Positions 3,641 through 50,848 of a DNA stretch of 64,000 nt are shown here, piece by piece; position 1 is the first letter of the stretch; each line of letters begins with the position of its first letter. The position numbers and the translations under genes are program-made. The stretch lies in IMG/VR virus record IMGVR_UViG_3300046517_002304, positions 62,001 to 126,000 of that record. One strand, 5' to 3'. A model generated the notes under the pieces. That model was not told where the DNA came from. It made no database searches and saw nothing but the letters and a program-made list of their open reading frames with translations.

Positions 3641-5599
3641 CTATTCCTCTAATGTACTAAAGCCATCTTTCTTAGCAATAGTTATGGTTTCACAATTTTC
3701 TAATAAATCTAATAAGACTTGGTCGTGAGTGACGACAATTACCTGTCTTTCCGTGGCCAGTTCGCATATTAGCCTATACACTCCCTCAATGCCGTCTTTA
3801 TCAAAGAACGCCCCAACCTCATCTAGCATAACAATACTAGGCGAAGTTCCAGAAGATATTGACATAATATAGCTGAATGCTTGCGATATACTTAGGTCAA
3901 TCCTCTTTTTTTCTCCCCCCGACGTAGCGTTATAAGCAAATGCATCGCCGTCTGGTGGGCACCGTTCAATAACTTCATTTAGGTTATTATCAAATACAAC
4001 TTTTAACTTATCATTAATTAAAAAGTGCAGATAATATGCAATCTTATTATTAAGAGTTGGGATAATATCATCTAGAAGAACCTTTCTAATTCCATCTTCA
4101 CTAAATCCGTCTATCCAGAAATTATAGTAAGTTAACTCTTTGGTCGCGTCATCTATGTTCTGACTAATACCCGCTAGCTTTTTCTGACATTCGCTTAGTT
4201 CATTTCCTATAGTCTTAATAATTGACTTATACGGATTCCCGCCATTTAGCTCATGCTTGATAGAAAAAACTTTATCCTCTAGTGATGATATTTGTTCTTG
4301 GATTAAACGATTTTGATGACTTGTATCAGGCTTTTCTATTGAAATCAATTCTTTGATTCTTTGTTTAATAAGTAAAATTTTACCTTCTGTTGCCTTAACT
4401 TTATTCTTTATTTCTACCTGCATCGCCAATGCTTTTTGAGTATTATTTTTTGCGCCTTGGAACGTTGCTTGGCTTCCAGATAGAGCTATGCCGAGTGAGT
4501 CATTTTCATTTTCTAAGTCTTTTATGCCTTCTTTTTTATGGTTTAGAACCTTTTCGTAATTTTCTTTAGCCACAGTGCCAAAGCATATAGAGCAAGTGGC
4601 CCCTACTTGAAGGTTTTCTAACATATAAGCGTCTTTATTAATCTTTGCAATTTCTTTTCTGTTTCGCTCAATAGATGCTTCAATGGTTTTTACATGATTA
4701 TTGATGTCATTTTCTTTGCCTCTCATAATTTCTAATTTGTCATAAATTGCATTTATAGCAGTTAAACATTTTTCCTTACTGGCTTCGGCATCGGAAAGTA
4801 ATTGGCTATATTCCTTGATTTTTATTTGAGCGTTTTCGTATAACAGAATCTGATTTCCATCATCTGTTTGTAATATCTGCTGCTTCTTATTATCTAATAG
4901 CTTTTCTAATTCACTTAATTCTTGTGTTTTTTTGGTATTCCATATTGATTCTTGGTTAGTAAGTTGAGTTAACTTGTTCTGGTACGACTTTTCATTACCG
5001 AGTAGGTTTTCATAATGAATGCGCTGCTCTTTGATTGATGTGCTTACATTTTTGTATTCTTCCTTACTGATTTCGTAAAATTTATTATACTTGTCCAAAG
5101 CAAGGATGTTTTCTACAATTTTTCTTTTAGTGCTAGGTGGAGCAGAAAGAAAGTCATAGTTATTGTGCTGCCCAAAGCAAGCGATATTAACAAATGCATT
5201 ATAGCTTAATTTTATAATGTTCTCTAAGAGTTCTTGCGTAGCAGGAATACCGCCTAGAGTAAGCTCCTTGTCTTCTTTCCACAGCCTAAGAATATCGGGC
5301 TTTCTAGTTCTTAGAATTTTATAATCATCAAAACACAGTTCAACTTCTAATCCCTTTTTGTTTTTTTTGTTGATTATATCTGAATGAGATAGATTGCGAA
5401 TAGTTTTGCCGTATAAGGCGTAAACGATAGCCTCAAAGATACCGGATTTACACGAACCATTGCTGGTAGGCTCATCTTTGTCTACATCGTAATTTTTACC
5501 CTTTAGCAAGATAATATTACCGTGTTTAGTGAAGTCAACGAAAACAGGCTCTTCTCCGATAGAGAAGAAATTCTTAGCTTTAATAGATTTGATATGCAT
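3641..5599 (-). CDS. gp46: SbcC/Rad50-type recombination endonuclease ATPase subunit (T4 gp46-like)
   Basis: IKSIKAKNFFSIG start, Walker A variant NGSCKS, Q-loop FGQ, coiled coil with CSIC zinc hook, signature SGGEKKR, Walker B MLDE, H-loop VTHD. Confidence 0.95.
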   Translation of the reverse strand: MHIKSIKAKNFFSIGEEPVFVDFTKHGNIILLKGKNYDVDKDEPTSNGSCKSGIFEAIVYALYGKTIRNLSHSDIINKKNKKGLEVELCFDDYKILRTRKPDILRLWKEDKELTLGGIPATQELLENIIKLSYNAFVNIACFGQHNNYDFLSAPPSTKRKIVENILALDKYNKFYEISKEEYKNVSTSIKEQRIHYENLLGNEKSYQNKLTQLTNQESIWNTKKTQELSELEKLLDNKKQQILQTDDGNQILLYENAQIKIKEYSQLLSDAEASKEKCLTAINAIYDKLEIMRGKENDINNHVKTIEASIERNRKEIAKINKDAYMLENLQVGATCSICFGTVAKENYEKVLNHKKEGIKDLENENDSLGIALSGSQATFQGAKNNTQKALAMQVEIKNKVKATEGKILLIKQRIKELISIEKPDTSHQNRLIQEQISSLEDKVFSIKHELNGGNPYKSIIKTIGNELSECQKKLAGISQNIDDATKELTYYNFWIDGFSEDGIRKVLLDDIIPTLNNKIAYYLHFLINDKLKVVFDNNLNEVIERCPPDGDAFAYNATSGGEKKRIDLSISQAFSYIMSISSGTSPSIVMLDEVGAFFDKDGIEGVYRLICELATERQVIVVTHDQVLLDLLENCETITIAKKDGFSTLEE

Positions 5600-5635: not shown

Positions 5636-5923
5636 ATGGACTTTTACAAGTTTCTTAGTTTAATAGAGGCTCCTGCTCCCATGCCTCCAGCAGGTGGCGC
5701 ACCTGGGCCAATGCCTAATGCTGGACCAATGCCAGCCGCTCCACCAGGTCAGCCACCGCAAGCAGGAGCACCCCCACCAGAGCCACCAGGACCGCCAGGC
5801 ACAGAGCCACCACCAGATGGGCAAGATCAGCCAGTTCCTGATGTAGAAGTGCCTACAATGGACGCCTGGAGCGTTTTAGACAAGTTTGTTAAAAATAGCA
5901 AGGGTAAGAAAGCTAAGCCATGA
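5636..5923 (+). CDS. Pro/Gly/Ala-rich protein with capsid-targeting-like N-terminus and basic tail
   Basis: MDFYKFLSLIE, APAPMPPAGG..., C-terminus KSKGKKAKP; TATATA-N4-ATG. Confidence 0.7.
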   Translation: MDFYKFLSLIEAPAPMPPAGGAPGPMPNAGPMPAAPPGQPPQAGAPPPEPPGPPGTEPPPDGQDQPVPDVEVPTMDAWSVLDKFVKNSKGKKAKP

Positions 5924-6774
5924 ACTTTAAGAGCTGGTTATTGACCGAAATGCCTATAACCAAGTTCCAGTTGGCTGGAGATTGGAGTGATAATGCGCCT
6001 ACTAGAAAATTTAAGAGGGCTGACATAGGAATATTGACAAGTTTAAAAGGCGTAGAAAAAATACATAAGAAATGGTCAAATACCAAAGATAATTTTGAAT
6101 TATATTTTGTTAGGTCTAAAGATGCATCAAAATACGAGCAGATAGGCGAAGTTGATCTGCAATGGGTAAAAGATAATTTGGGATTACACTTAGCTCCATC
6201 AGAAGACGCTATTACAGTTATATTTACCGGAAATGTTGGCGGCACAAATGCTATGCCTATGAGCGCTTGGATTATAGCACATCGTGTTGGCCAGGCTCTT
6301 ATGGGAAGAAAGACGACTCATGAAGTTTTTGCAGAGCATTTTGTAGAAAACGTAAAAAGAGATTTCCGGGATATTTTAGAATGTATTTATAACAGAAAAT
6401 ATGACGTAGAAAATACCCGGGATTATTCTGCTCGGAATAGAATGGAACAAAAAATACAAGATGACATAATTTTACTTGCACAATCCGTGGCAACAATGAG
6501 GTCTGCAAGAGAAAAGAAAATTAATACGTTTTATGAATTTTGCTATGAATTAGTAGCACAATATGTTATAACTGGTCACGTCAAATTTAATCCTTTGCCA
6601 AAGGAAGTTTTTACAGGAAGACTTTGGGGTAAAGAGAGATATAAGGCTAGCTCTGGAATAACCGAACAAGACATGGATGGCTGGAATCAACGTCTTAAAA
6701 CTATGTCAAGGGATTATGAATATTATCTTGATCAGACGTTTGGGAGTATGATTGGCAAAATATTTGTGATGTAA
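5920..6774 (+). CDS. Hypothetical protein with capsid-targeting-like N-terminus; degenerate zincin-like WIIAHRVGQA segment
   Basis: MNFKSWLLTE; 284 aa; ATGA overlap with the upstream gene. Confidence 0.7.
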   Translation: MNFKSWLLTEMPITKFQLAGDWSDNAPTRKFKRADIGILTSLKGVEKIHKKWSNTKDNFELYFVRSKDASKYEQIGEVDLQWVKDNLGLHLAPSEDAITVIFTGNVGGTNAMPMSAWIIAHRVGQALMGRKTTHEVFAEHFVENVKRDFRDILECIYNRKYDVENTRDYSARNRMEQKIQDDIILLAQSVATMRSAREKKINTFYEFCYELVAQYVITGHVKFNPLPKEVFTGRLWGKERYKASSGITEQDMDGWNQRLKTMSRDYEYYLDQTFGSMIGKIFVM

Positions 6775-6777
6775 TTT

Positions 6778-7605
6778 TTAATCTCTGTATCGGTCGGCAA
6801 CTCTACTAATTGGCACTTGGAATTCTACTTGCGATTTATAATAATCTTCGGTATTTTTTTCACCAGTTATCATTTCTAAAAACTCAATCCATTTATCCCC
6901 GTTCCAAGAATAAACTCTACCCCAAGAATACTCTGGTTTTTGTAATTCTTGTATTACCTTTTGATTAAACTTGTACCCTTCTTCGCCGTCAAGAATTCCG
7001 AAACTACTATGTTGCATTAAGTCATGTAGGTAATTTAATATTATGTGCTCTACATTTGGCTGTGATTGTCTTTGAAATCTAGTTGATGTTTTATTTCCTG
7101 ATGGGCTGATGTCGGGAACCTTGCCTCTATTTGCTAGATTAATAAATTTCCTAATGGGAATCTCTGCATGGCTTTCTACTGGATATATTACTCCAGTAAT
7201 ATACTTTGGGGGAATGTCGCGCTTTACCATTGTTTGCAAATGACTTTCTCTATCCCATTTTTCTCTATCGTCTACATCTGGTTCTAGCAAAGATGCAGGA
7301 ACTTCTAAAATAAAAATTATTTCTTTTCCACCGAAATTCATTACTGCTTTGTGAGAGTACATGTCAGCTCGGCCAGATGAAAAAGTAAAAAATATTCCAG
7401 GGCTTGTATTTTTATAATTCATTCTTGTCTTGTCAAATTTTAGGCCACCCTGAACAATTTCCCAGAAAAACTTTGTGCTTGTTCCGTGATAAACAACAAT
7501 TTTTTTGTTGCCTAGTGATTTCTTAAATTCAGGCTTATCAAATGGATCATGAACGATTGATAAATCAATCGGAGATTCGGAAACAAGCCATTTTCTAAAA
7601 TTCAT
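6778..7605 (-). CDS. Putative ADP-ribosyltransferase-fold protein with capsid-targeting-like N-terminus
   Basis: MNFRKWLVSE from ATG 7605; VYHGTS...GGL...PGIFFT...ADMYS...FILEV...DIPPKYI pattern typical of ART/PARP-like folds; TAAATA-N5-ATG. Confidence 0.7.
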   Translation of the reverse strand: MNFRKWLVSESPIDLSIVHDPFDKPEFKKSLGNKKIVVYHGTSTKFFWEIVQGGLKFDKTRMNYKNTSPGIFFTFSSGRADMYSHKAVMNFGGKEIIFILEVPASLLEPDVDDREKWDRESHLQTMVKRDIPPKYITGVIYPVESHAEIPIRKFINLANRGKVPDISPSGNKTSTRFQRQSQPNVEHIILNYLHDLMQHSSFGILDGEEGYKFNQKVIQELQKPEYSWGRVYSWNGDKWIEFLEMITGEKNTEDYYKSQVEFQVPISRVADRYRD

Positions 7606-7647
7606 ATAATTATTTACTGTTCCCGGCACGATAAACTAGTACATAAT

Positions 7648-8697
7648 ATGAAACAAGTTTTAATCTTCAGCGATGCTCATATTTCTTTACACAAAGGTTC
7701 TTTGGACAGAATGCAAGACTGTCTGAACGCGCTGGAGTGGGTGTTCACAACCGCTAAGCAAAAAAATATTGACACAGTTATTTTTGTTGGTGATTTGTTT
7801 CAAGACAGGCAGAAAATACAGGTTATAGCATATCAAAAGACATTTGAGATACTTGAAAAACACAAAGACATTAACCTGTATCTTTTAATCGGCAACCACG
7901 ATATGTGGAACTCTGAGAGTAGAGAAATATCTAGTATTTTTCCATTGCGCGCCTTACCAAAGGTAAAAATTATAGATCAGCCGTGTTGTCTTAATATTAA
8001 GGGCGTTAACGTAGACTTTCTTCCATACACCAAGAATCCCAAAGAATGTGTGGAAAATAACTTTAAAGAAAAGTCAGACGTTTTATTCGGCCATTTGGCG
8101 ATTGACGGAGCATACTTAAATACCTTTTATAATACCGTGTCAGAAGTATCTGTTGAATATGAGGGGGATATGGTTAAGGTAGATGTCGGCGTATTTAATG
8201 GTTGGAAGAAAGTTTTACTTGGTCATTACCACGGCGCACAAAAAGTTAATGAGATAGTAGAATACATCGGCTCCCCACTTCAGTTAAACTTTAATGAAGT
8301 GTTTCAGAAGAAACACATTATTGCGATGGACTTGGACAACCTGTTCTGCGAATATATTGAAAACACCTTCTCCCCGCGACACCTAATCGTTAAAGAAAGC
8401 GAAATTGGAAACTATAAGCTAAAAGGTAATTTTGTTAGAATTGAATCTGATAACCTAAGTTCATCTAAAATAATTGATATTAAAAATAGCCTAAGCGGAG
8501 TTGTGTCAACGCTGGAATTTAAAGAAATCAAGTCCAATAAGCACAATGAATTAAAGACAGATCTGGATAAAGCTAAAAAGATATTGTCTGAAGGTGAGAT
8601 TGTTGAGAAGTATATTTCATTAGTAGAGACTAGTCTTGAGAAAGAAAAGCTAATGTTAATCGGCAGACAAATTATTCAAAAAGGAACAAGTAGTTAG
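7648..8697 (+). CDS. gp47: SbcD/Mre11-type metallophosphoesterase nuclease subunit (T4 gp47-like)
   Basis: Motifs FSDAH, GDLF, GNHD, GHL, GHYH, YIGSP in canonical order. Confidence 0.95.
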   Translation: MKQVLIFSDAHISLHKGSLDRMQDCLNALEWVFTTAKQKNIDTVIFVGDLFQDRQKIQVIAYQKTFEILEKHKDINLYLLIGNHDMWNSESREISSIFPLRALPKVKIIDQPCCLNIKGVNVDFLPYTKNPKECVENNFKEKSDVLFGHLAIDGAYLNTFYNTVSEVSVEYEGDMVKVDVGVFNGWKKVLLGHYHGAQKVNEIVEYIGSPLQLNFNEVFQKKHIIAMDLDNLFCEYIENTFSPRHLIVKESEIGNYKLKGNFVRIESDNLSSSKIIDIKNSLSGVVSTLEFKEIKSNKHNELKTDLDKAKKILSEGEIVEKYISLVETSLEKEKLMLIGRQIIQKGTSS

Positions 8698-9140
8698 CTT
8701 TTTGGTCCAGTTTTCTGTTTTGGCGGATTTAACATCGGTAATTTAGCAGGCTCTTTTTCTAGGTTTCTCATAAATGGAACTACTTCTTTAGCAATTTCAG
8801 ATGCTGAAGTTCCAGTAATAGCCTTTGTTCCATGTACCGCGACAGATTTATTGCCGCGATTATAGAGTCCTTTAGAGATTACGAATTTACCAGTTCCTGC
8901 GTGATAAGATAGGATTCCCGCCCATTCTCCGTCGTCAAAGTGTCTAGTGGCAATTATAATTCTTTGTGGCTTCTCATCAAATACCTGTTTAATGTGAAAT
9001 CCTGCCGACTTCAGCGCCGCAGATACATACCCTAGAGTTAACTTGGCATAGCCTTCTAAAACTTCCGGAAGGGCAGTACGGTAATTAATATTGATACTAT
9101 ACCTATTTGAGTCTTCGTTTAAGAATTCGCTAAATTTCAT
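8694..9140 (-). CDS. Hypothetical protein with capsid-targeting-like N-terminus (MKFSEFLNE)
   Basis: 148 aa ORF; basic Pro-rich tail; TATATA-N2-ATG. Confidence 0.7.
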   Translation of the reverse strand: MKFSEFLNEDSNRYSININYRTALPEVLEGYAKLTLGYVSAALKSAGFHIKQVFDEKPQRIIIATRHFDDGEWAGILSYHAGTGKFVISKGLYNRGNKSVAVHGTKAITGTSASEIAKEVVPFMRNLEKEPAKLPMLNPPKQKTGPKS

Positions 9141-9173: not shown

Positions 9174-9491
9174 ATGCAATTTTCTGACTATATTTCCATT
9201 ACAGAAGCAAAAGAAAACAACATACCATCTGGTGTAAAGAAGATTGTAAATGATCAGCTTCATCAGATTGGTACTAAGTATTGGAAGTCTATTCCTATGA
9301 AAGAGATAGATGCTATATTAAAGCAGCAGGGCATCACGTATCAGGACGATGGTTTCTTTTTAACGGGAAGAGATAGTCGGGACAGCTTTGAGCTTATATA
9401 TAATGGTATGCCCGTATCTAACTCTATGCTAATTTTAACTTGGTATAAAATGCCGTCTGGTAATTGGGAAGTTGTCGCATATCTAAGCTAA
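9174..9491 (+). CDS. Putative internal head protein, paralogue of 2908..3219
   Basis: MQFSDYISITE; aligns end to end with 2908..3219; AGGA upstream. Confidence 0.7.
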   Translation: MQFSDYISITEAKENNIPSGVKKIVNDQLHQIGTKYWKSIPMKEIDAILKQQGITYQDDGFFLTGRDSRDSFELIYNGMPVSNSMLILTWYKMPSGNWEVVAYLS

Positions 9492-9492
9492 C

Positions 9493-9843
9493 ATGGACTT
9501 TAAACACTGGGTAAATGAAGTTAAAACAATTCCTTTAGGAGATTGTTTTAGGTTTGCCACTATGCGGGCAGTTGAAATGATCGGCGATGGCATTATACCG
9601 CCAAAAGATATAGTTGTAGTTCATGCTATAGTACACCCTAGATGGGGCGGAAATCCATATCCTCATGCATGGATAGAATCTAGGGGCAAGTGCTGGGATT
9701 GGCAAATGCGTCAGACTAAAACGTATTCTATACCTGTCGCTGATTTCTATAAGGAATACAATCCTACAGAAATCAAGCGTTACACTGGTAATGAAGCGTT
9801 AAGAACTATGATTAAAACTGGCCATCATGGGCCATGGAATTAA
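9493..9843 (+). CDS. Putative papain/transglutaminase-fold (Cys-His-Asp) protein with capsid-targeting-like N-terminus
   Basis: MDFKHWVNE; GDCF ... HAWIE ... WD spacing consistent with a catalytic triad. Confidence 0.6.
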   Translation: MDFKHWVNEVKTIPLGDCFRFATMRAVEMIGDGIIPPKDIVVVHAIVHPRWGGNPYPHAWIESRGKCWDWQMRQTKTYSIPVADFYKEYNPTEIKRYTGNEALRTMIKTGHHGPWN

Positions 9844-20165: not shown

Positions 20166-21827
20166 ATGATAAGAGAAGATTTATTAAGTAAGCCATATGC
20201 TGAATATAAGGCCAGTAATTATATTCAGTACGAGTGTGATTATTGCGGGAAGGTATTTGAGCGTGATAAGAAGTATAGAGAGCGCTCAGTTGCGTATGTA
20301 AATAAGGATAGTTGCGGAGACAAACCGTGTACGCAGAAGAAAAAAGAAGACGTATCTATGTTTAGATACGGTACTAAAAGCCCAGGCCAATCTCAAGAAG
20401 TTAAAGATAGGATAAAACAATCTAACATAGAAAAATTTGGCTGTGGATCTTATTTTGAAACTGATAAATTTAAAGAAAAAAGGAAAGAAACTCTAATAGA
20501 AAATTTTGGTGTAGATAGTCCGCTTAAATCGCCAGAGATTAGAAAAAAGATTGAAAAAACTTGCCTTGAGAAGTATGGTACAGAAAATTATTTCCAGACT
20601 GATGAATTTAAAAATAAGTCTAAAGAATCAAGCCAAGAAAAATATGGCACGGACTCACCTATGCAGCACCCAGATGTTCTGGCAAAAAGAGACGAAACAT
20701 GTATTGAAAAATACGGGGTGAAAAATTATACTCAAACCGATGAGTATTGGGAAAAAAGAAAAGCCAGTTCATTAGAAAAGTATGGGGTAGAGCATACCCA
20801 CCAACTTCCAGAAGTACAAGAGAAGATGAAGAAAACCTGTCTAGAAAGGTATGGTTTTACTAATTATGCGATGAGCGAAGAATCTAAACAAAGGTACATT
20901 AAAACATGTATGGAAAAGTATGGCGTTCCTAATCCTTTATGTTTAGAAGAAAATCAAGTTTATGGAAAAGCACAAAAGGAAATACAGGATTGGCTCCAAG
21001 CACTGGGATTAGTCTTTAAAAGTGATTACAGTGTCTTAAAGAAGAAGCAAATTGATTTATTTAATGATGATTTAAAATTGGGCATTGAATATTGTGGATT
21101 ATTTTGGCATAATGAAGTTTCCCCTACTCCGAGAGATAGCCGATATCATTATCGTAAATATAAGGCATGTAATGAAAACGGAGTTTCTTTGATTACTATT
21201 TTTGAGGATGAGTGGACTCTTAATAAAAATAAATGCAAAGATATATTAAAAGGAATACTTGGCATTTATGATATTCGCTTGTATGCTAGAAAATGCTCTG
21301 TATCTCTTATTGATAAAAAACAACTAAGAGATTTTTGTGAAGCAAATCACATACAAGGCTCTAACAAAAGGGCGATAGTTTGCTTCGGCTTATTTTATGA
21401 TCAAGAATTAATGGGCGTTATGTCTTTAGGTTATCACCCACGAAATACAATTAAGGATGTTATTGTACTAGACAGAATGTGTTTTAAGAACGGCATTCAA
21501 GTAGTTGGTGGAGCCAGTAAGTTATTTAAACAGTGCGCAACATGGGCTGTTAATAATAGTTATAAATCTATTGTCACATGGAGTGACAATAGATGGAGTG
21601 ATGGTAAGGTGTATGATATTTTGGGATTTGATTTAGATAAGAAGCTTCCTCCCGATTATAGTTATGTAAACTTACACAATGTTAGACCTGGAAGAACAAG
21701 CAAGCAATCGCAGAGAAAGCTTTTAACTGGATGCCCTAAAGATAAAACAGAGCACGAGTTTGCTTTGGAAAATGGCTTTGCCAGGATATGGGATTGTGGT
21801 AAGAAAAGATGGATTTTTAATCTTTAG
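20166..21827 (+). mobile_element. Homing-endonuclease-like protein: EKYG repeats, PD-(D/E)xK-like nuclease and C-terminal GNAT/Mom-like domain
   Basis: Multiple [CS][LI]EKYG-type repeats; IDLF...IEYCGLFWH...YKAC...LITIFEDEW; then NHIQG...LDRMCF...GGASKLF...TWSDNRWSDGKVY..LGF. Confidence 0.7.
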
Positions 21828-38192: not shown

Positions 38193-38426
38193 CTAAACAT
38201 GCCTGATCTTAATTAATTTTTTGGCCTCAAGCTGCTTGATGTGATCCGTCATTTTTTCGTCTGGAATAGTAATAACGTTTAATCCACCACCTATGCCGGG
38301 GATGTTAAGTGATTTAAAGGCCCTAGTAGTATTAACACACGCCTGTTGCTTTTTATTATAACTTCCTTGAGTAGATTTAACTAAAATTTGAATTGGCCCT
38401 TTGGTTTTATTGGTGATTTCTAGCAA
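38193..38426 (-). CDS. Small hypothetical protein between gp15 and gp18
   Basis: 77 aa; overlaps the gp15 stop. Confidence 0.6.
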   Translation of the reverse strand: MLEITNKTKGPIQILVKSTQGSYNKKQQACVNTTRAFKSLNIPGIGGGLNVITIPDEKMTDHIKQLEAKKLIKIRHV

Positions 38427-39367
38427 TTTTTTAGCTCCTCTACTGATTTAATGTCTGTTGAAATTACTGCCTTAATGTCGTTTGGATCTACGGCATCTAC
38501 CATGTCTACTACCGTTTTAAGAACTGCCTTCTTGCGAATAATAGGTTGCGGTAGGTATGTTTCTGCCATAAGTGAAAACTGGTATTTAATTGTACGAAAC
38601 TCTGTATCTCCCACGTCTACGTTTAAGTTATTACTTATACTAGTCATGGTAACCGGGATTTCCCAATGTACGCCAGACACCTTAATATAAGTCATTTTAG
38701 GAATTATTAGTTTAATTTGTGTTAAAATTTGCATCATATCAGCGATATACGTGGTCCAAGCAGTTAATGTATACCCGATGTTAAGAGGAATACCTCTAGA
38801 AAAACTTAAAACTGTGTCTCGCTCAAACTGCTCATTAACAGTAGACCCTGGTTTGCCGTCTGGCCTAGGAAATGACCTAGTAACTTCTTCATAAGTATAT
38901 CTTTTTTCATCAAAGGTATACTCTGATGCATAAATTGACATGATAGGCAAAGGTATTCTATCGGCAATTAGAGAATTATCTTTTCTTACACTTGCTTGCA
39001 GAATTGCCGCCACTGCCTTTTCTTGCGTTCCCCAAATTATCGGCACCGTATGATCTTTGCCTTCTACATCTAAAACTATAATACTGGAGAATAAATCCTT
39101 CATTGCCATATCTGTACCGCGTAATGATTGAGGATAGCGATTAATCACACCACGGTCAGGGTCACTTGTATCGTTGATAATTTTACCAGACTGCATTGGC
39201 GAGCAATTTGCTCTTTTGCCTAATGAATCATCTTCAGTTGAATCTAAGAATGGAACGTTATTTAGATTTGGTCTGTTTAAAGGATCAGCAGGACTACATT
39301 TATTACGAAGCGGATCAGTTATAAATGATGGGATATCTGAAGGAAATTGACAAGGATTATCAGGCAT
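38420..39367 (-). CDS. gp15: Tail terminator / sheath stabiliser (gp15-like)
   Basis: VPIIWGTQEK, IPLPIMSI, PLNIGYTLTAWT...QILTQI, IKYQFSLMAETYL; TAAATA-N4-ATG. Confidence 0.8.
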   Translation of the reverse strand: MPDNPCQFPSDIPSFITDPLRNKCSPADPLNRPNLNNVPFLDSTEDDSLGKRANCSPMQSGKIINDTSDPDRGVINRYPQSLRGTDMAMKDLFSSIIVLDVEGKDHTVPIIWGTQEKAVAAILQASVRKDNSLIADRIPLPIMSIYASEYTFDEKRYTYEEVTRSFPRPDGKPGSTVNEQFERDTVLSFSRGIPLNIGYTLTAWTTYIADMMQILTQIKLIIPKMTYIKVSGVHWEIPVTMTSISNNLNVDVGDTEFRTIKYQFSLMAETYLPQPIIRKKAVLKTVVDMVDAVDPNDIKAVISTDIKSVEELKNC

Positions 39368-40845: not shown

Positions 40846-41886
40846 TTATTTCCTGATATAAAGGTTTTGGGTTGTCTCAAGACATTGTTTTCTATTCACT
40901 ATTCTGCTAATGCCGCTACGATCCATCCCGGTAATTTTTGCTATTTTTCTTGCCGAATTGCCTTCATTCCATAAATTGATTACCTGTATAATATTATCTT
41001 TTGTAAATTTTCTTTTTGTTTTTAACTTACTATTAGGGTTATTGTTCTTACTACGAACAATCCGATGAATCGTTGTTCTACTAATAGAAAACTTTTGAGC
41101 CAGATCCTTGCATAGCATAGATTTTTTATTATATGCGTCAACAATAAAAGCAATTTGCTCTTGTTTTAAAGTAATGGGATCGTACTTATCTTTATTTATG
41201 ACCCCAGCATTTTCTATGCTTAGCTTACGGCTGAAACATTGAATTTTGCAGATAAATGGATGGATTCCAGAAATAAATGCCAAGTAATCTTTTTGTGATA
41301 TGTTGAGTGTTGGGTGGCCTAATTTATCTATGTGTATCGTAAAAGTTAAATTTAAGGATGATTTCAATTTTTCCGATAGAAATTTTACCTCGGAAACCTG
41401 AAAGCCATTGGTTGATATTCTAATCGCTTTTTTCCTTGGATTATTCGTTCCATCATCCATATACCAGTAAGATAAAACTTCCCAGTTCATCGGAATATCA
41501 GCGGGTACTATTTTTATTCTGCGACCCTGTTTATTATAAGCGTAATTTCCATCTGAATTTCGTAAGTACCATTTTTTCTCTAATTTAGTAAATTCTTCGT
41601 GGCATTTAGTTCTAAATCGCACAGAATAGAATGATTTGCTATAGTCTTTTCCTATTATTCCTAATCCAGGTTTATTTAAAACGCCCGGTACAGTTTCGTA
41701 GGACAGTTTACCATTAAAATCAGAAAAAGCAAGCTGTGCGTTCAAAACATATTCTTCGTGTTGTATACATTGTTTAAAGCTAAAATGAGAGTTCCATTTT
41801 GAATTTAGGACTTTTTCTAACATTCCATCGCCTAACATATGTCCAGTAATTCTATTAAGCTGCGATTCGGTTAATTTACTGTCCAT
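40846..41886 (-). mobile_element. LAGLIDADG homing endonuclease with two C-terminal HTH domains
   Basis: ITGHMLGDG and LSYWYMDDG motifs; CKDLAQKFSISRTTI and SARKIAKITGMDRSGI. Confidence 0.88.
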
Positions 41887-42488: not shown

Positions 42489-45400
42489 TTAAACTTGTTT
42501 GCCGCATTCTATATTGGGAAGCGGGTCTGTAAAAGAACACCTGCCGGCCCGACGTTCGGCATCAACAACTTGTTCCTCTAGATATGCGGTTGCAATGGCT
42601 AGCGCATTAGATGGTGTGCATAGATCGTACTCATTCCAATTTCTGTTAAACGTATCGACATACATAATTAACCCTGCATCGTTGACGATTCTTACTTTTT
42701 TAATTGCCACTTTGTCTAGAACTCCAACTCTGGCCTGCCGGCAATCGTAAACAACAGAGCCAACCATGTATTTGGCGAAGTATCCATAGAAAACATCTAT
42801 GTCAGCACACCCACCGAAAATTAATCCACCAGTTCCATTAACTAATCTAAGAACGATTAGAATACACTCGCATGTCATATCGCAAAAAGCATTACGGACA
42901 ATTTGTCCAGATGAATGAATATTAGATGCACAAATTATGCTACATTGGTCTAATTCGCCTTCTTTACCTGATGCAGATAAGCCACAAGTACATGTAACAT
43001 GACAAGTTGCCATATGTTGAACATTAAAAGATATTGCAACAGCGGACGAGCAAGGCAAAACAAGAGCAATCTTATGGTCAACGTGACCTGTCGCATTGAA
43101 TGAACAAACATTCGTAAATGTTGCGGTTTCAACCAAGGGAAGAAATTGTTGTAAAGTGATTTGGCCCGATGGAACGAACGATCCTAACCCTAAGCCAAAC
43201 AATACGCTGTTAGTTGTAGTGTCATAAATTCCCTGAGTCTCAATTATTTCACCATATGTAAATGTGCTGTTGTAGCTGTAATAAAAGGATTCAGTTGACC
43301 ATGTTGTACCTCCGTCATTTGAATAGCTAAATGCCGGCTGTTGTGCACCAAATCTCCCAAAAAACATCAGTCGGCCAGTAGGCGTAATAATTAATGATGC
43401 TTCGCTTGGTAACGGAACATGAGTATTATTAAAGATTTGAATGGGCGACGACCATGTTGCTCCATTGTCAGTTGACACGGTTGTCCAGTAGCCCTTGTCT
43501 GCCGTAGTTAACGAATCGCCTCTAAGAACGCCGAAGATATTTCCATTAGCCTTCTGAACGAAAGCCATGAATCCAAATCTTTTGCCACTAGCAGAAGTAA
43601 CAATATGTTCATTCCCCCAGGTGGCTCCGTTATCCGAGCTGGTAACGACAGTAATTGCATCGTTAAGAGCTGTTAGGCCGATCAATAGATTGCCGTTTTG
43701 CAGCCTTAATGCCGGACCACATGGTGCGGCATCAGCAAATACACCACTAGTTATAGTAGCTAGAGCTGACCATGTTATAGAAAGATCATTATTGACAATG
43801 CCCTTAACGATCTTTGCGGTGTTATTGGAACCAGAATTTAACTGATCCACATATGAAACAAGAATGGTGCCATCAGTTAAGACCGCCACTCTGCCGTAGT
43901 CAAAGCTACGGCCGGTTGTAGGCGTTAAAATTGTGGTGGCTGCTGACCACGTTAGACCATTGTCTGACGACGTTCTAAATACTAGATTTGCACTAATTCC
44001 AGTGCCGTCACCGATATGATAGGTGCAAAGTAATCGCCCATCTAATAGTCGGCCCAGGCCAGCGCCATAATTATTCGCTCCGTCATTAACAGCATCTGAT
44101 GTATATCCGAATCTAATTTCTGGCCTGATACTAAAGATATCATTAAGATAATTTTGTATATAGACGTTTAAGTTGCGAACATCAGCCCCAGTCATACCCC
44201 TTCCAATGGATATCGCCGATACAGTAGATGTTGTTACGGAACTAGCCGAAGCCCCGGAACCCACTGTGCGGAATACTTCTGATGGCATTGATGCTGCGCC
44301 AGTGCTATGTAGAAGTGGTATGCCCGCATAATAGCCATAAACACTATTGCTAGCTACTCTAGTTGCTCCGAAAAGTCCTGTTTTTGTTACTAATCCAGTT
44401 GGCTCTAATGATGATGTTGAACTATCGCCAGCATTACAAGCCCATTGATACCTCGGCCCAGGAGTGTATACTTGGATATAATTTTTATCATCTAATGATG
44501 TGCCTAGAAGAAGCCCGTTATCACCACCGGGGGCCGTGGCACGCCATGCAAAAACTGACGCGCTGTTTAAGGCAAAATTTGGCGTGCCTACGGTTGGATT
44601 AAATGTTGTATTAATATATGAGCTATTTGTACCACTGCCAACGTATCCTGAATTAGTAGTGAACGTCAAACTTCCTACAACGCTTGAATTGAAAGAACTT
44701 TGTATTAGGTTTGTCAAAGCAGTTGCCGTATCTGCGGCGGCGTAGATATTTAAAATATCTATTTTAGACCAAACACCATCGGCATATAGTCCATCTATAA
44801 GTGTACTATATGCTGCTGCACGATTGGTATCTGGATAAGTGGCAAGACGATTAAGAAATTGTAAAGATTGCGGGGATGGTAAAGTAGCACTAATGCTAAG
44901 AGGAATAAATTGTTGGAACACAATTTGAGCCGCATTAAAATCGCCAACGGCTATAGCATACATCAGGGTCTGCGTAGATGCGTCGTAAAATCCTTGAGAA
45001 TATACGTAAGACCCAGTGAAAAATTGCCCTATTGTATAAATGGTGATTGGAGTGGACCATGTAATTCCACCGTCGTGAGAATAGACATACCCGACTGATG
45101 TATTTGGCGTATTTGAAACACTCGCAAAACGACTTACAAAAAACAAGTCGCCATTTGGCTCTCTTAATAATGCCGGCCTAGCTGGCTCTGGGGCGATAGT
45201 ATTATTGAAAATTTGAACTGGTATTGCCCAGGTGGCTCCATTATCTTTAGATGATGTCCTCCAGTATCCCTTACGAGATGGAGTACCTCCGTTATCATTG
45301 CGAATAATTCCGTAAATTATACCATTTGAAAATTGTATAAAATTTGATTCACTCCAGTCATCACCAGTTCCGTTCGATGTAATCTGAACATCGCCACCCC

Positions 45401-46664
45401 ATGTTAGTCCATCGTCAGCGCTGAAGGCTACATATGTTCCAGTAGACCCGGTAAACACATAGTAGGGGCACATCAGAGTTCCATTTGCTAGTTGCAAAAT
45501 TACTGATGTTGTATCTTTGTTAGTCCCTGAGCTAATAGCAATTCTAGATCCCCAGGTAATGGATAGATCGCCGTGAACCGTGCCTCGTATGACGTATGGA
45601 GTAGCCGTAGCTCCACTATTTGGCTGATCATTAAATGTCAGCAAAACTGTTTTAGCCGTACTAACCATGACTTCTATATCAATTAATGTTCTGCCGGATG
45701 CCGGTGTCATGATCGTTATTGGCCCAGACCATGTTACTCCGTTATCTGACGAAGTACGATATGCGACATATGCGTCCAGCCCGCCAGATCCGCCAGTTGA
45801 ATAAGCCATGAACAATCTGTTATCAGGAGCGGCTAAGCGGCACATACCAGGGGATTCATTGTTAGCTCCGTCATTAATAATGTCAGAACTAAATCCACGC
45901 TGAGGTATCGTACCGCAACCGATAATATCTGCCATATAATTGTTAACAGCAGAATACAGATTTCTCCAATCTGCACCAGTTAAGCTACTACCGCAACCAG
46001 CAACAGATACCTGACTGCTAGTACCGGCACCATTATCCGATAGAATTTTTACGGTTTGACCGGAAGTAAAACCAGTATTTGTTCCCGTAAACTGATTTGA
46101 GGCTACTCCATTTAAGTAAGCGTGACCATGCGTTGAGTCCTCAAGGTTTACTCCAAATAAACCTATATTAGACGCCATGTTAAATGTGCCGGTATTATCG
46201 GCGACATTCGCTATTCCATAATTAAATCTATGACTTGAGGTTGGGGTGCCAATGTAGGTGTTGCTTGGGGGGATGCCTATTAATCCACCGTTATCGCTAA
46301 CCGGGATTGTATTTTTCCAAACAAATAATGATGCACTACTTGTTTTGAAATTAGGCGAGCCAACTGTAGGATCAAAATTAGAATTAATGTAATCAACTGG
46401 AGTTGTCGCTGAGTTTGTGCCAGTATAACCAGCATCGGTAGCAAATGTAGGTGACCCTACTTTAGTTGCTCCGTAAGAGTTTTGAACTAAATTCGTTAAT
46501 GCGGTAGCTTCGTCTGCGGCAGAAAATACATAAAGAGCATCTAATTTTTGCCATACACCAGCATAGTACAAAGCGTCTATTAACTTTGCGTAAGCAGTTG
46601 AGCGCGGCAAATTTGGCTGTGTTGCCAGTCGGACAAGAAATTGATTAACTTGAGGCGATGTCAT
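42489..46664 (-). CDS. Large virion protein: two tandem modules each ending in a BNR/Asp-box (sialidase-like) propeller, then 20-aa Cys repeats and a C-terminal domain
   Basis: Eight Asp boxes (SSDNGVTW, ADDGLTW, KDNGATW, HDGGITW, SSDNGLTW, SSDNGATW, TDNGATW, NDGGTTW); duplicated FL.RLAT.P...AY..LID.LY..GVW.K.D. Confidence 0.85.
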   Translation of the reverse strand: MTSPQVNQFLVRLATQPNLPRSTAYAKLIDALYYAGVWQKLDALYVFSAADEATALTNLVQNSYGATKVGSPTFATDAGYTGTNSATTPVDYINSNFDPTVGSPNFKTSSASLFVWKNTIPVSDNGGLIGIPPSNTYIGTPTSSHRFNYGIANVADNTGTFNMASNIGLFGVNLEDSTHGHAYLNGVASNQFTGTNTGFTSGQTVKILSDNGAGTSSQVSVAGCGSSLTGADWRNLYSAVNNYMADIIGCGTIPQRGFSSDIINDGANNESPGMCRLAAPDNRLFMAYSTGGSGGLDAYVAYRTSSDNGVTWSGPITIMTPASGRTLIDIEVMVSTAKTVLLTFNDQPNSGATATPYVIRGTVHGDLSITWGSRIAISSGTNKDTTSVILQLANGTLMCPYYVFTGSTGTYVAFSADDGLTWGGDVQITSNGTGDDWSESNFIQFSNGIIYGIIRNDNGGTPSRKGYWRTSSKDNGATWAIPVQIFNNTIAPEPARPALLREPNGDLFFVSRFASVSNTPNTSVGYVYSHDGGITWSTPITIYTIGQFFTGSYVYSQGFYDASTQTLMYAIAVGDFNAAQIVFQQFIPLSISATLPSPQSLQFLNRLATYPDTNRAAAYSTLIDGLYADGVWSKIDILNIYAAADTATALTNLIQSSFNSSVVGSLTFTTNSGYVGSGTNSSYINTTFNPTVGTPNFALNSASVFAWRATAPGGDNGLLLGTSLDDKNYIQVYTPGPRYQWACNAGDSSTSSLEPTGLVTKTGLFGATRVASNSVYGYYAGIPLLHSTGAASMPSEVFRTVGSGASASSVTTSTVSAISIGRGMTGADVRNLNVYIQNYLNDIFSIRPEIRFGYTSDAVNDGANNYGAGLGRLLDGRLLCTYHIGDGTGISANLVFRTSSDNGLTWSAATTILTPTTGRSFDYGRVAVLTDGTILVSYVDQLNSGSNNTAKIVKGIVNNDLSITWSALATITSGVFADAAPCGPALRLQNGNLLIGLTALNDAITVVTSSDNGATWGNEHIVTSASGKRFGFMAFVQKANGNIFGVLRGDSLTTADKGYWTTVSTDNGATWSSPIQIFNNTHVPLPSEASLIITPTGRLMFFGRFGAQQPAFSYSNDGGTTWSTESFYYSYNSTFTYGEIIETQGIYDTTTNSVLFGLGLGSFVPSGQITLQQFLPLVETATFTNVCSFNATGHVDHKIALVLPCSSAVAISFNVQHMATCHVTCTCGLSASGKEGELDQCSIICASNIHSSGQIVRNAFCDMTCECILIVLRLVNGTGGLIFGGCADIDVFYGYFAKYMVGSVVYDCRQARVGVLDKVAIKKVRIVNDAGLIMYVDTFNRNWNEYDLCTPSNALAIATAYLEEQVVDAERRAGRCSFTDPLPNIECGKQV

Positions 46665-46670
46665 GTTTTA

Positions 46671-47762
46671 TTATTTAAACTTTTTATATACCTCTTTATA
46701 AATTACCGTAGACTGCGGATCAGGCTCTACAGTAGTATTTAGTATGCGATTCAATCTATCTAAAGGAACTTTAATTGTTGGAATTCTACTTATTTCGTTT
46801 GAAGTGACAGTAATTTTTTTATCTAAGATATAATGTATATTATCGCCAAGATATTCGGTAATTAAATGCTTTACTGGTCCAGTTCCCTTGATATAAACTG
46901 TTTCTCCGATGTGGAACCGTACGTAAACCAAATGATGGGCTATATTTTCATGAAGACGCAAAACACAGAAGCAGCTAATATTAAGCGATGCTCTGTACAC
47001 TATTTTTGCGGAAACTTCTATGAACGAAGATTCTGATAAATGGCAAGTACTTTTACTTATGTTTCTACCGGAAGAACTAAAATTAGACAAGCATATAATA
47101 TGATTAGTGCCTATGTGTGACACTTTTGAAGATGTTGTGATATTAGAATTACATAATACCCTACATGTATCATTATTTGCATTTTTTCCTAATGCCACAA
47201 TGTTGGAATTACAATTTATACTATTTGCCGCAACATGAGCCACGCCTGAAGATGTCGCGATATTAGAATTACACAACAATCTACATGTATCATTATTTGT
47301 ATTTTTACCCGATGCATTGATATTAGAGATACAAACTATATGGTCAGTGCCTATGTGTGATACTCTTGAAGATGACGCGATAATTGAGGAACAAGGTATA
47401 TTGGATGTTAAGCCGCGCAATATTCTGCTATTTCCGCTAATATTAGAAGTACATATAGCATTAGTTGAATCTAGATGAGCTACTTTTGCATTAGCGATTA
47501 TTGTAGAGTCACACCGTACATTAAGGCTAACTATGTAAACAACTTTTGTAGATAGAGTTATGTTAGAGCTGCAAACTATGTGGCAAGTTGCATTATGCAC
47601 AACGGCACAAGATGATGTAACATTAGAAGCGCTTATTTCATTTGTGGTCGTAATGCACGTTAGTTTAGCACTAGCATTAATATTAGATGAACAGACTAAG
47701 TTGGTGTTTCCAGCTTGAAGTAAGCCATTCTTAAAGAAAAATTGATAACGGTAACCTAACAT
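46671..47762 (-). CDS. Protein of ~20-aa Cys/Ser/Asn repeats with a small C-terminal beta domain
   Basis: C.SNI repeat with 20-aa period (DTCRLLCNSNIATSSGVAHV / DTCRVLCNSNITTSSKVSHI). Confidence 0.75.
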   Translation of the reverse strand: MLGYRYQFFFKNGLLQAGNTNLVCSSNINASAKLTCITTTNEISASNVTSSCAVVHNATCHIVCSSNITLSTKVVYIVSLNVRCDSTIIANAKVAHLDSTNAICTSNISGNSRILRGLTSNIPCSSIIASSSRVSHIGTDHIVCISNINASGKNTNNDTCRLLCNSNIATSSGVAHVAANSINCNSNIVALGKNANNDTCRVLCNSNITTSSKVSHIGTNHIICLSNFSSSGRNISKSTCHLSESSFIEVSAKIVYRASLNISCFCVLRLHENIAHHLVYVRFHIGETVYIKGTGPVKHLITEYLGDNIHYILDKKITVTSNEISRIPTIKVPLDRLNRILNTTVEPDPQSTVIYKEVYKKFK

Positions 47763-50700: not shown

Positions 50701-50848
50701 CATACCATTTCACGCTCCCCGACCTGCTAGGCAACACTAACCACCAGCTAATTAATCCATTGGCAAGAGAATGCTTGCGATTGACTGGGTTTGGGAAGTC
50801 AATATTATTATTAGATATGGAGAATAACTGTGAGCTAATTAGGGGCAT
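47762..50848 (-). CDS. LamG/concanavalin A-like virion protein A (3 LamG domains plus conserved C-terminal module)
   Basis: 3x WH/WQ-type strand...DG...DDVR[VI][YW]NR.L; shared C-terminal EFQFGNAQGDDGAF; TAAATA-N4-ATG. Confidence 0.88.
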   Translation of the reverse strand: MPLISSQLFSISNNNIDFPNPVNRKHSLANGLISWWLVLPSRSGSVKWYDLIGSNHGTLTTMPQATNGFRGSSRKGGFGSMLLDGIAGSVSVGAKPNLDLAGPFTISCWCNLTGTGANLVPFSKVVAGTNGYMIYFGSQSLAPQFFCYGLTPANITWGSSGLNNGWHFIAAGFDGGNTFISVDGKTPVKSSTTGSPSPAVGTPFNIGIYGASNAWFPGYVDDVRVYNRALNANEINQMYQNSQQGYPNLINRTTKRIWNGSVNIVNYPNGPNTSQPTIKNNLKQTQLVNPRSTLNKGLVSWWLCVPSRMSGPLWQDIAGKNHGTLVSAGAGLVNAGFRPNIRQGGFGSMLFNSNFTSYVTVPFSQSFNIGIYTISVWFKTNGNNMFITDSNGATVDKFRLIIGVVGGKGTSQKLTAEIFSTAGSNYTDVTSQNTVNDNKWHNAVTVMDGAKLSLFIDGVLASTPLNVQPGVITGEADNFFIGEGGNGVNPTGGNFFNGYIDDVRIWNRPLVAQEIQQVYLDALSGYQKTLNRRITDPLNFGVAISEIVKYTNGPNTSQTSIRNNLRQTQLINQRNPLNKGLLAWYLCTPSRAGSINWFDISGNNKHGTFTNMSRIDDGFRSNTRQGGFGRMRLGSAAGYITSTINTGLSNSFTMSVWVNPIAIANNMILIASNVAALSDYWATISSLNNNKWRASLYDGTQNPSVQSAAPNIITGQWQQVVFVRDRATNKLLLYYNGKSAATPVTDQTTVVPVYSAFNIGFETGGNVIQASVDDVRIWNRALSAQEIQQVYLDSLSGYQKTLNEENKRLSNYAQFGITPNPTNTNLKGVDVRQTANQIVFRQMLTDSSGNIVTAGPTSIYLYELQNDGGIRAYDFTRNQFTVNSLVSPSATMSQQMAAGGTLATGLWTYALTNPTALTPGTVYLTQINNSNASPSWVVKEFQFGNAQGDDGAFTEFIVTAGSTTNTVNTNRTETSGFWNKSVLAFTTGSLKGISIKLNSYTGGGAFATNISLPTAPVAGDRGLIVGTE
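50055..50098. repeat. 44-nt identical segment shared with 58813..58856
   Basis: ACAATGTTAACTGATCCATTCCAGATTCGCTTTGTTGTGCGATT present in both LamG genes A and D. Confidence 0.9.

Follow-up and report, generated by a model that had tools for sequence, protein, structure and literature searches.

A predicted head-packaged ADP-ribosyltransferase with a T4-type N-terminal tag in a 511-kb soil phage

Results

An ADP-ribosyltransferase-like gene between the gp46- and gp47-like genes of a giant phage

Analysis of a 64,000-nucleotide stretch of IMG/VR virus record IMGVR_UViG_3300046517_002304 (hereafter the window; bases 62001-126000 of the 511,233-bp record) uncovered an intact open reading frame (ORF) on the minus strand at 6778..7605, which encodes a protein of 275 aa plus stop, P0001, with the hallmarks of an ADP-ribosyltransferase (ART) behind a short targeting-like tag. 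The ATG lies at 7605 and the stop codon at 6778-6780. A longer product from a GTG at 7629 was judged unlikely because a promoter-like TAAATA box (7611-7616) falls between the GTG and the ATG, inside that extension. The source (G000 in coordinates below) is a complete virus record with direct terminal repeats and 39% GC, and near-identical phage DNA was found in at least six soil and rhizosphere metagenomes. The record encodes ribonucleotide reductase, tail sheath and a T4 baseplate protein, along with a head module in T4 order (gp23 capsid protein, gp22-like scaffold, gp21 protease), and on this gene content the phage is a T4-type myovirus. The ART gene lies between gp46/SbcC-like and gp47/SbcD-like genes. 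Features of the locus, in window coordinates, are as follows.

3641..5599, minus strand: gp46/SbcC-like ATPase, flanking context only
6781..7056, minus strand: family-specific acidic helical domain of P0001 (aa 184-275), isoelectric point (pI) 5.0
7057..7125, minus strand: basic linker (aa 161-183), pI 11
7126..7575, minus strand: ADP-ribosyltransferase-fold domain (aa 11-160), from the AlphaFold model, structural searches and profile alignment
7234..7236, minus strand: Gln124, start of strand 4, conserved jointly with His40 and the D-x-D-D loop
7267..7278, minus strand: DVDD (aa 110-113), conserved D-x-D-D loop after strand 3
7357..7359, minus strand: Tyr83 in helix 2, second conserved aromatic (60/77 family domains)
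7390..7392, minus strand: Phe72 in strand 2, aligning with Tyr49 of Arr-ms
7474..7491, minus strand: YHGTST (aa 39-44), NAD+-binding motif in strand 1
7576..7605, minus strand: MNFRKWLVSE (aa 1-10), propeptide resembling a capsid targeting sequence, predicted to be cleaved after Glu10 (V-S-E)
7611..7616, minus strand: TAAATA box, 5 nt upstream of the ART ATG, resembling a T4 late promoter
7648..8697, plus strand: gp47/SbcD (Mre11)-like nuclease gene, oriented divergently to that of the ART and serving as context only

The motif strings from which a preliminary description had proposed a tagged ART were all found in P0001, in the order given there: YHGT (aa 39-42), GL (54-55), PGIFFT (69-74), A..Y (80-83), ILEV (99-102) and IPPKYI (131-136).

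P0001 adopts an ADP-ribosyltransferase fold

An AlphaFold2 model of P0001, built from a 35-sequence alignment, was of high confidence (pLDDT 92.7, pTM 0.90). In this model the ART fold spans aa ~25-160, with strands at aa 35-43, 71-74, 95-103, 124-127, 136-140 and 148-150 and helices at aa 44-53, 77-91 and 151-159. Comparison of the model with 48,161 chains by VIA-align returned ARTs as all of the top matches, led by the NAD+ lobe of KptA (Z-score 9.2), the Rhs toxin TreX (8.6), PltA (8.0) and Arr (7.7), the last having the highest identity among them (20%); although Z-scores of 7-9 lie in the range where a match can be mere shared arrangement, these top matches belong to one superfamily. LT, Scabin, CARDS, pertussis toxin, DarT, PARP13, diphtheria toxin and PARP16 followed. 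Foldseek searches of PDB, BFVD, AFDB clusters and ESM Atlas likewise placed ARTs on top, with a best probability of 1.00. The preliminary description had named a non-ART predicted structure as an outcome that would count against it; instead, the model is confident and every top neighbour is an ART, so that P0001 almost certainly has an ART fold.

Sequence similarity points the same way at lower significance. The Pfam PARP model (PF00644) matches P0001 with E 1.8e-4 and 21.5 bits, short of its gathering cut-off of 26.7 bits, and over model positions 38-106 of 199 only; it matches 25/35 family members (best E 1.1e-7), some of which pass the threshold narrowly (for example P0012, 27.8 bits). ART-PolyVal (PF18760) gave E 0.016 and 16.4 bits for P0001 against a cut-off of 31.2 bits, which is not reached, and matched 7/35 members. 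The sequence matches in PDB were PARP16, PARP10 and PARP15. No Pfam model matched P0001 at its cut-off, a PHROGs search of the protein gave nothing useful, and phmmer of aa 92-146 against PDB returned a chance match to phage GP37 only. The resemblance of P0001 to ARTs exceeds chance.

A predicted active site with an Arr-like aspartate

Across 77 family domains the conserved residues are Y39, H40, G41, T42, S43, G54, G70, Y83, A at 84, G92, G93, P103, D110, D112, D113, Q124 and I136, from which a family signature of YHGT[ST], an aromatic at 72, Y83, D110-x-D-D and Q124 can be drawn. His40 is kept in 67/77 domains, and position 72 is Tyr in 35/77 and Phe in 33/77. Two other candidate catalytic residues were rejected: Y135, suggested by a HMMER alignment of 'DIPPKY' to PARP16, occupies a position that is highly variable in the family, and E101, in the middle of strand 3, is conserved in only 39/77 domains and is kept in the subgroup without His40.

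A remote counterpart of this site is seen in Arr. Alignment by hhalign of the P0001 family with an Arr profile, built from 78 genuine Arr genes of bacterial genomes (three of which were checked, matching PF12120 with E 1e-41 to 1e-49), gave P 6.4e-5 across 118 columns; with a reversed control, P was 0.21. The alignment pairs H40 with His19 of the Arr HGT motif, F72 with Tyr49, D110 with Asp84 of D-P-N, and I-T-G-V-I with the Arr strand I-V-G-V-V; family-wide, the corresponding set is H40-G-T, F/Y72 and D110 in D-[P/V/I/L]-D-D. Mutagenesis has identified His19, Tyr49 and Asp84 as critical in Arr-ms (PMC6092378). Judged from its residue pattern, P0001 is thus very probably a working enzyme of the H-Y-[EDQ] class of ARTs, its Asp resembling that of Arr, with D110, D112 and Q124 as the candidates for the third catalytic residue.

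The family nevertheless lacks the canonical catalytic Glu, and this raises the alternative that P0001 is a catalytically dead ART-fold protein, serving as a structural internal head protein or as a binder of NAD+ or ADP-ribose. P0001 has Phe instead of Tyr at position 72, which fits such a protein, as does a related subgroup of ten (P0027, P0030, P0034, P0037, P0039, P0041, P0042, P0048, P0072 and P0085) that has lost the site yet persists, so that ART-fold proteins of this family can evidently be kept without catalysis. The members of this subgroup retain the fold-defining residues, the C-terminal helical domain and an [LI]-I-E propeptide end, and are probably catalytically dead, still-packaged paralogues. 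The same comparison, however, argues for activity in P0001 itself. The D-x-D-D loop (D110, D112 and D113) is kept in 61/67 domains that bear His40, 47 of those 61 also having Q124, while neither the loop nor Q124 is kept in any of the 10 domains that lack His40. His40, D-x-D-D and Gln124 are lost jointly and so behave like a single functional unit. P0001 carries all three, and it and 60 other domains keep H40, G41, T42, Y83, D-x-D-D and mostly Q124, exactly the residues lost in the degenerate subgroup, a pattern such as selection on an active site would leave; Tyr and Phe, moreover, are about equally frequent at position 72 across the family. On these grounds P0001 is likely to be catalytically active, and the dead-enzyme explanation is the least probable of those considered here.

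A tag resembling the T4 capsid targeting sequence

In T4, the capsid targeting sequence (CTS) is MKTYQEFIAE (PMC8442874); residues 4 and 7 matter most for targeting, and residues 8 and 10 for processing (PMC9026906). The T4 gp21 protease cuts after Glu and removes the N-terminal propeptides carried by gp23, gp24 and Alt as well as by the internal proteins (PMC5694885). The N-terminus of P0001, MNFRKWLVSE, combines aromatics F3 and W6, aliphatics L7/V8 and a Glu at 10, and so has the aromatic spacing of the T4 sequence (Y4, F7, I8, E10) with a register one residue off. A secretion signal was considered and set aside, as the tag is too short, acidic and without a hydrophobic core.

Several observations speak for a CTS-like role of this tag. 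The pattern M-x(1,2)-F-x-x-[FWY]-[LIVM]-x(0,3)-E opens 28/862 crude ORFs of the genome, compared with 3/3025 internal Met. The orthologues at three loci (L001, L002 and L008) all open with MEFRKWLE, at a start missed by gene callers, so the tag is kept in proteins only ~45% identical overall. Its codons differ synonymously between orthologues (for example CGT/AGG/AGA and CTT/TTA), and conservation therefore acts at the amino-acid level. Family-wide, a Glu preceded by [LIVMW]-x stands exactly four residues ahead of the conserved Asp14, both in short-tagged members and in members with N-terminal extensions of 90-530 aa, a fixed register of the pattern expected from a shared maturation cleavage. 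The genome also encodes a Peptidase_S77 (gp21-type) protease (E 1.4e-25; G000 164016-164702), adjoining a coiled-coil gp22-like gene and gp23. The genome's gp23 has an L-N-E site in its N-terminal region, the same region in which T4 gp23 is cut at a similar site. The targeting-like tag of the preliminary description thus finds backing in its enrichment at N-termini, its conservation in orthologues, its match to the key residues of the T4 CTS, the T4-type gp21/gp22/gp23 genes, the fixed-register Glu, the late-promoter-like box common to tagged and virion genes, and the polyvalent architecture of relatives (the last two described below), which together support, in silico, a candidate head-packaged, injected ART. 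Packaging and injection of P0001 are probable on this evidence.

About 28-31 ORFs of the genome are tagged, most of them without known function, and one opens with MKTFQEWLKE, nearly identical to the T4 CTS. Taken together, the tagged ORFs look like a large head-delivered cargo set. Six tagged genes, including the ART gene, cluster around the gp46/gp47-like genes; the other members of this cluster, the first two of them between those two genes, are listed below.

5636-5923, plus strand: tagged ORF, 95 aa, Pro-rich, MDFYKFLSLIE
5920-6774, plus strand: tagged ORF, 284 aa, MNFKSWLLTE
8694-9140, minus strand: tagged ORF beyond the gp47-like gene
9174-9491, plus strand: tagged ORF beyond the gp47-like gene
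9493-9843, plus strand: tagged ORF beyond the gp47-like gene

Further tagged ORFs in the window lie at 2908, 18616(-), 23754(-) and 25322(-). Across G000, tagged clusters occur at 41-53, 64-72, 80-86, 143-165 and 231-250 kb, with others at 309 kb and 490 kb.

A late-promoter-like box ahead of tagged genes

In T4, late promoters have the consensus TATAAATA, which the TAAATA box before the ART gene resembles; the gene has no Shine-Dalgarno sequence. The same arrangement distinguishes tagged genes in general: TAAATA or TATATA stands ~10 nt before the ATG in 18/28 tagged versus 49/834 untagged genes (odds ratio 29, Fisher p 8e-15), while a Shine-Dalgarno sequence precedes 3/28 tagged versus 235/834 untagged genes. 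Genome-wide, 31 genes contribute to a sharp peak of TAAATA (or ATAAATA) at -10/-11 relative to the ATG, including genes for the tail sheath stabilizer and virion structural proteins. These patterns suggest T4-late-like promoters that would give leaderless mRNAs for virion and cargo genes, and the box of the ART gene implies a late mRNA, leaderless or nearly so, that would be expressed with virion genes.

Because most tagged genes appear leaderless, their 5′ coding regions are possibly under special constraint, which leaves room for a different account in which P0001 is an unpackaged ART, active late inside the infected cell, and the tag serves leaderless translation, localisation or turnover. 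The ART gene does lie outside the head module, and T4 itself has unpackaged ARTs, ModA and ModB, as described in a survey of phage ARTs (PMC9503650). The same 49 untagged genes, however, have the box, so that the tag is dispensable for this mode of expression and is not merely a by-product of leaderless translation. The conservation of the tag as amino acids despite synonymous changes, its reproduction of the functionally mapped residues of the T4 CTS, the fixed-register Glu ahead of the domain even behind long N-terminal extensions, and the gp21-type protease in the genome all argue likewise for packaging, and we consider an unpackaged P0001 improbable.

Other occurrences of these boxes were also recorded. 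TATATA stands at -10 to -12 in about 20 further genes, and box genes are mostly without a Shine-Dalgarno sequence. Examples in the window lie upstream of 38420-39367(-), 42489-46664(-), 47762-50848(-) and 52874-55090(-). The same TAAATA box precedes a LAGLIDADG-type homing endonuclease gene with a helix-turn-helix domain at window 40846-41886 (-), inside a tail/virion block.

An undescribed, metagenome-only family

In a 5.8-billion-protein collection P0001 has only six relatives, at ~45% identity, and when 1.84 billion cluster representatives were searched exhaustively with HMMER, 81 proteins came up at E <= 1e-3. A locus search with the 7-sequence alignment found 4 viral loci. By tblastn, no real homologue of P0001 was found in 50,697 phage records (E up to 10), in PLSDB plasmids (E up to 1) or in pattern-seeded GTDB species genomes; nothing came nearer than a PARP-domain protein of a Vibrio phage (E 0.2) and, on a Rhizobium plasmid, a stretch of 80 aa (E 8e-3). 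As the deposited phage genomes, PLSDB plasmids and pattern-seeded GTDB genomes searched yielded no homologue, the family is metagenome-only and uncharacterised, and P0001 is best described, from its sequence relationships, as a member of an undescribed phage-specific family within the H-Y-[EDQ] ARTs, with a tag of the T4-internal-protein type.

Distant relatives are multidomain proteins that combine the ART domain with Peptidase_Mx, SprT-like, ART-PolyVal, GNAT, LPD1, PBECR5 or Nudix domains. By its domain content, this layout is the 'polyvalent' effector architecture predicted for DNA-coupled delivery. The survey cited above concluded that ARTs are often virion-packaged in myoviruses, that they occur in >40% of jumbo phages and that phage G has at least 10 of them; the evidence in the passages considered consists of MuF fusions, polyvalent proteins and gene neighbourhood, and includes no CTS-type tag (PMC9503650).

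The same genome encodes a second tagged family member, of 449 aa, at G000 246244-247593 (+) (HMM E 5.4e-8; locus L006), with the motifs FFYHGTST...PDED...Q...VPPSAI. Two tagged ORFs nearby, at G000 248423-249622 (+) and 250274-250726 (-), show LYHAT or NLYHGS motifs and might be ART-like, although they did not reach significance.

The relatives lie in varied contexts. On two related T4-like contigs (L001 and L002) an N6/N4 DNA methyltransferase gene comes next after the ART orthologue, and on L002 a TnpB/Cas12f-like (IS605 OrfB) gene is inserted between the two (coordinates for this context are L002 6463-7638, L001 6823-7437 and L002 7700-8332). A different, 154-kb phage contig (L009) encodes a family member with a 150-aa N-terminal extension ending in V-D-E, 2 kb upstream of a fused SbcD-SbcC gene. 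This member and a neighbour (L009 5512-6846 and 2769-4220) open with MRSLVEQIVQEILE and MKIREIVKEILNE, starts that are possibly a different targeting tag.

The linker and C-terminal domain are specific to the family

Beyond the ART domain, G161, K162, P164, I166, P168, R176 and F177 of the basic linker are invariant among the close relatives aligned, as are W234 and W239 of the helical domain. For this C-terminal domain no relative was found in Pfam or the atlas and no convincing one among structures; weak helical matches with Z~5 were dismissed, and FG-GAP repeat matches (P0036 and others, aa 230-270) were judged to be spurious W/G-rich repeat similarity. Residues 184-275 are presumed to form a target-recognition or docking module. 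After the predicted cut at Glu10, the mature protein would comprise 265 aa, with a computed mass of 30.9 kDa and pI of 7.1.

Comparison with known ADP-ribosyltransferases

The preliminary description had cast P0001 as a possible functional analogue of T4 Alt, and this stands for the strategy, as predicted in silico, but not for the family. Both are ARTs of T4-type myoviruses with an N-terminal propeptide of the kind removed by gp21, and the carriage of Alt in the head and its injection with DNA are what we propose for P0001. Alt and VIP2, however, belong to the R-S-E clade and modify Arg; their strand-1 Arg, strand-2 S-T-S and E-x-E ARTT loop are absent from P0001, which has His40 in H-G-T, an aromatic in strand 2 (G-I-F-F-T) and D-x-D-D, and so falls with the H-Y-[EDQ] ARTs. 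Alt is also far larger than the 275 aa of P0001 and has no sequence similarity to it, and the tag of P0001 resembles those of the T4 internal proteins IPI-III, not the Alt propeptide.

With Arr (PF12120), P0001 shares a minimal ART fold, the HGT motif, a strand-2 aromatic, the I-x-G-V strand with the following helix, and an Asp in a D-P-N or D-x-D-D loop, after a V/I-E-P strand, in place of the Glu. It differs in its PARP-like strand 2, an extra 115 aa of linker and helical domain, its capsid tag and its phage-borne setting. Arr acts on an antibiotic hydroxyl; nothing in P0001 points that way. The likeness to Tpt1/KptA comprises YHGT and the C-terminal IPP-x-Y-I strand, common to both, and a structural match (root-mean-square deviation 2.6 Å over 87 residues, Foldseek E 4.6e-4) that is limited to the NAD+ lobe, KptA residues 87-180. 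Tpt1/KptA enzymes are defined by an Arg-His-Arg-Arg tetrad that lies partly in the RNA-binding lobe. P0001 has only ~25 residues ahead of the ART fold and no such N-terminal lobe, so this tetrad has nowhere to sit.

PF00644, with PARP16, PARP10 and PARP15, is the closest Pfam family, and these H-Y-[non-Glu] enzymes lack the catalytic Glu as P0001 does; the match to P0001 is confined, however, to the N-terminal half of the PARP model, the second half is Arr-like, and the H-Y-E triad is absent. ART-PolyVal shows weak similarity, and delivery with DNA is predicted for both, but P0001 stands alone with a short CTS-type tag and is not part of a giant multidomain protein or MuF fusion. Among viral proteins, the best structural matches (Foldseek E 4.8e-8 to 1e-3) are uncharacterised proteins with an ART fold from giant phages, namely Bacillus phage G (Gp53 and seven others, including Gp251 and Gp336) and Vibrio phage nt-1 (R9TEX3); tblastn found no sequence match between these proteins and P0001. 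They fit the expansion of ARTs in jumbo myoviruses outlined in the survey (PMC9503650).

These affinities raise the question of the acceptor. P0001 could be an injected enzyme with a non-protein substrate, either a small-molecule hydroxyl or phosphate (Arr-like) or a nucleic-acid end (Tpt1/KptA-like), examples being an antibiotic-like compound, a nucleotide immune signal or the capping of DNA or RNA ends. In structure the NAD+ lobe of KptA matches best, Arr has the highest identity among the top matches, and the Arr profile alignment spans the domain in full, DPN-type Asp and I-x-G-V strand included. Among protein-language-model neighbours, those named are Arr-ms, a viral cluster (16% of members with PARP) and Tox-ART-HYD1, although all scored <0.9 in the atlas and count as leads only. 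ARTs without the catalytic Glu often use non-protein acceptors or substrate-assisted catalysis (PMC8883491), and the gene sits between genes for DNA-end processing. On the other hand, the RNA-binding lobe of KptA is lacking and PF01885 matches just 1/35 members (E 0.23); strand 2 has the PARP-like G-x-[YF]-F; the nearest families by sequence, PARP16, PARP10 and PARP15, are protein-modifying; and the pI of the mature protein and that of its C-terminal domain are atypical of nucleic-acid binders. The affinities to KptA and Arr mean that a nucleic-acid end or small molecule should be taken seriously as an alternative, if a rather unlikely one, and a protein is the most likely target. Spread over all outcomes, a protein target has somewhat less than an even chance, a nucleic acid follows at clearly lower odds, and a small molecule or plain NADase activity, and equally an inactive protein, come lower still. 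One specific version is unlikely but would be of consequence: an Arr/KptA-like ART that, within seconds of injection, would ADP-ribosylate an immune signal, whether small molecule or nucleotide, or else the end of a nucleic acid, the latter in host DNA or RNA or at the phage's own termini as a protective cap, the enzyme being one item of a ~30-member, sequence-addressable, head-delivered cargo.

Proposed mechanism

Our preferred reading remains that P0001 is a tagged, head-packaged and injected mono-ART that would modify a host macromolecule, and we put the probability of this whole chain at roughly 0.55. The protein would consist of three parts, a 10-residue CTS-like propeptide, a mono-ADP-ribosyltransferase domain and an orphan helical domain, probably responsible for target choice. 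In the active site, NAD+ would be held by His40 together with Gly41/Thr42 and by the aromatics Phe72 and Tyr83, and an Asp of the D110-x-D-D loop, aided by Gln124, would stand in for the customary catalytic Glu in the manner of Arr Asp84. The gene would be transcribed late, from the T4-late-like TAAATA box, as a leaderless mRNA. The tag would then dock P0001 to the gp22-type scaffolding core of the prohead, and the gp21-type prohead protease would cut after Glu10, leaving the mature 30.9-kDa enzyme in the head with the DNA, with which it would be injected. In the new host it would mono-ADP-ribosylate a host macromolecule with host NAD+ before phage gene expression, and this modification may serve takeover or counter-defence.

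Several observations weigh against this chain. No Glu is conserved at the canonical catalytic position, in strands 4 or 5, across the 77 domains. The link to Arr is remote, with an hhalign probability of 64% for the local and 24% for the global alignment, and the Pfam Arr-ms model (PF12120) had no match in the genome at E <= 10. The tag of P0001 is one residue shorter than that of T4, and several orthologues have W-L-E, not [LIV]-x-E. As to its place in the genome, the ART gene belongs to the gp46/gp47 recombination-nuclease region and not to the head module. Finally, a search of sequencing runs matched soil and rhizosphere DNA runs only, with no RNA run and no proteome data.

Neighbouring and other genes

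Within the cluster of tagged genes, the product of window 5636-5923 (+) consists largely of Pro/Ala/Gly repeats (APAPMPPAGGAPGPMP...), and the end of the gene shares 4 nt with the beginning of the tagged gene that follows. That gene, 5920-6774 (+), is convergent with the ART gene, the stop codons being 3 nt apart; its product, for which neither Pfam nor PHROGs gave a match, is not homologous to the gene beside the L001 orthologue and yielded only a sub-threshold protein-language-model lead to nucleotidyltransferases (0.89). Elsewhere, a tagged 294-aa ORF at G000 236098-236982 (-), which opens with MRFREWLIQTE, has a zinc-metallopeptidase-like HELTH (HExxH) motif and may be another packaged enzyme. 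A short gp23-like fragment with two stop codons (G000 153450-153632 (-)) adjoins two tandem tagged paralogues of ~470 aa, MRFRAYLESFGSFNYRVP and MRFSQFIESFGSFNYRVP (G000 153771-156607 (+)). The 553-aa product of window 20166-21827 (+) has both DUF7487 (E 8e-44) and a Mom-like domain (E 2.6e-6), and may serve in DNA modification.

Discussion

The strategy of a packaged, injected ART is already known, and it is in clade and in the use of the tag that P0001 differs from Alt. T4 Alt is the one experimental case known of a head-packaged ART, and a wide distribution of such enzymes has been predicted from MuF fusions, polyvalent proteins and gene neighbourhoods. Here, a short T4-type CTS in a very distant 511-kb soil relative appears to address ~30 proteins, at least two of them ARTs, and with such a CTS-like tag the injected arsenal of these phages could be read from N-termini.

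The P0001 family itself would represent undescribed, phage-only ARTs with a predicted Arr-like Asp site and a predicted orphan target-recognition domain. P0001 is small, intact and easily expressed, and is thus a candidate for revealing a new ADP-ribosylation target in takeover or counter-defence; if that target proved to be non-protein, the biology of injected effectors would extend beyond protein modification.

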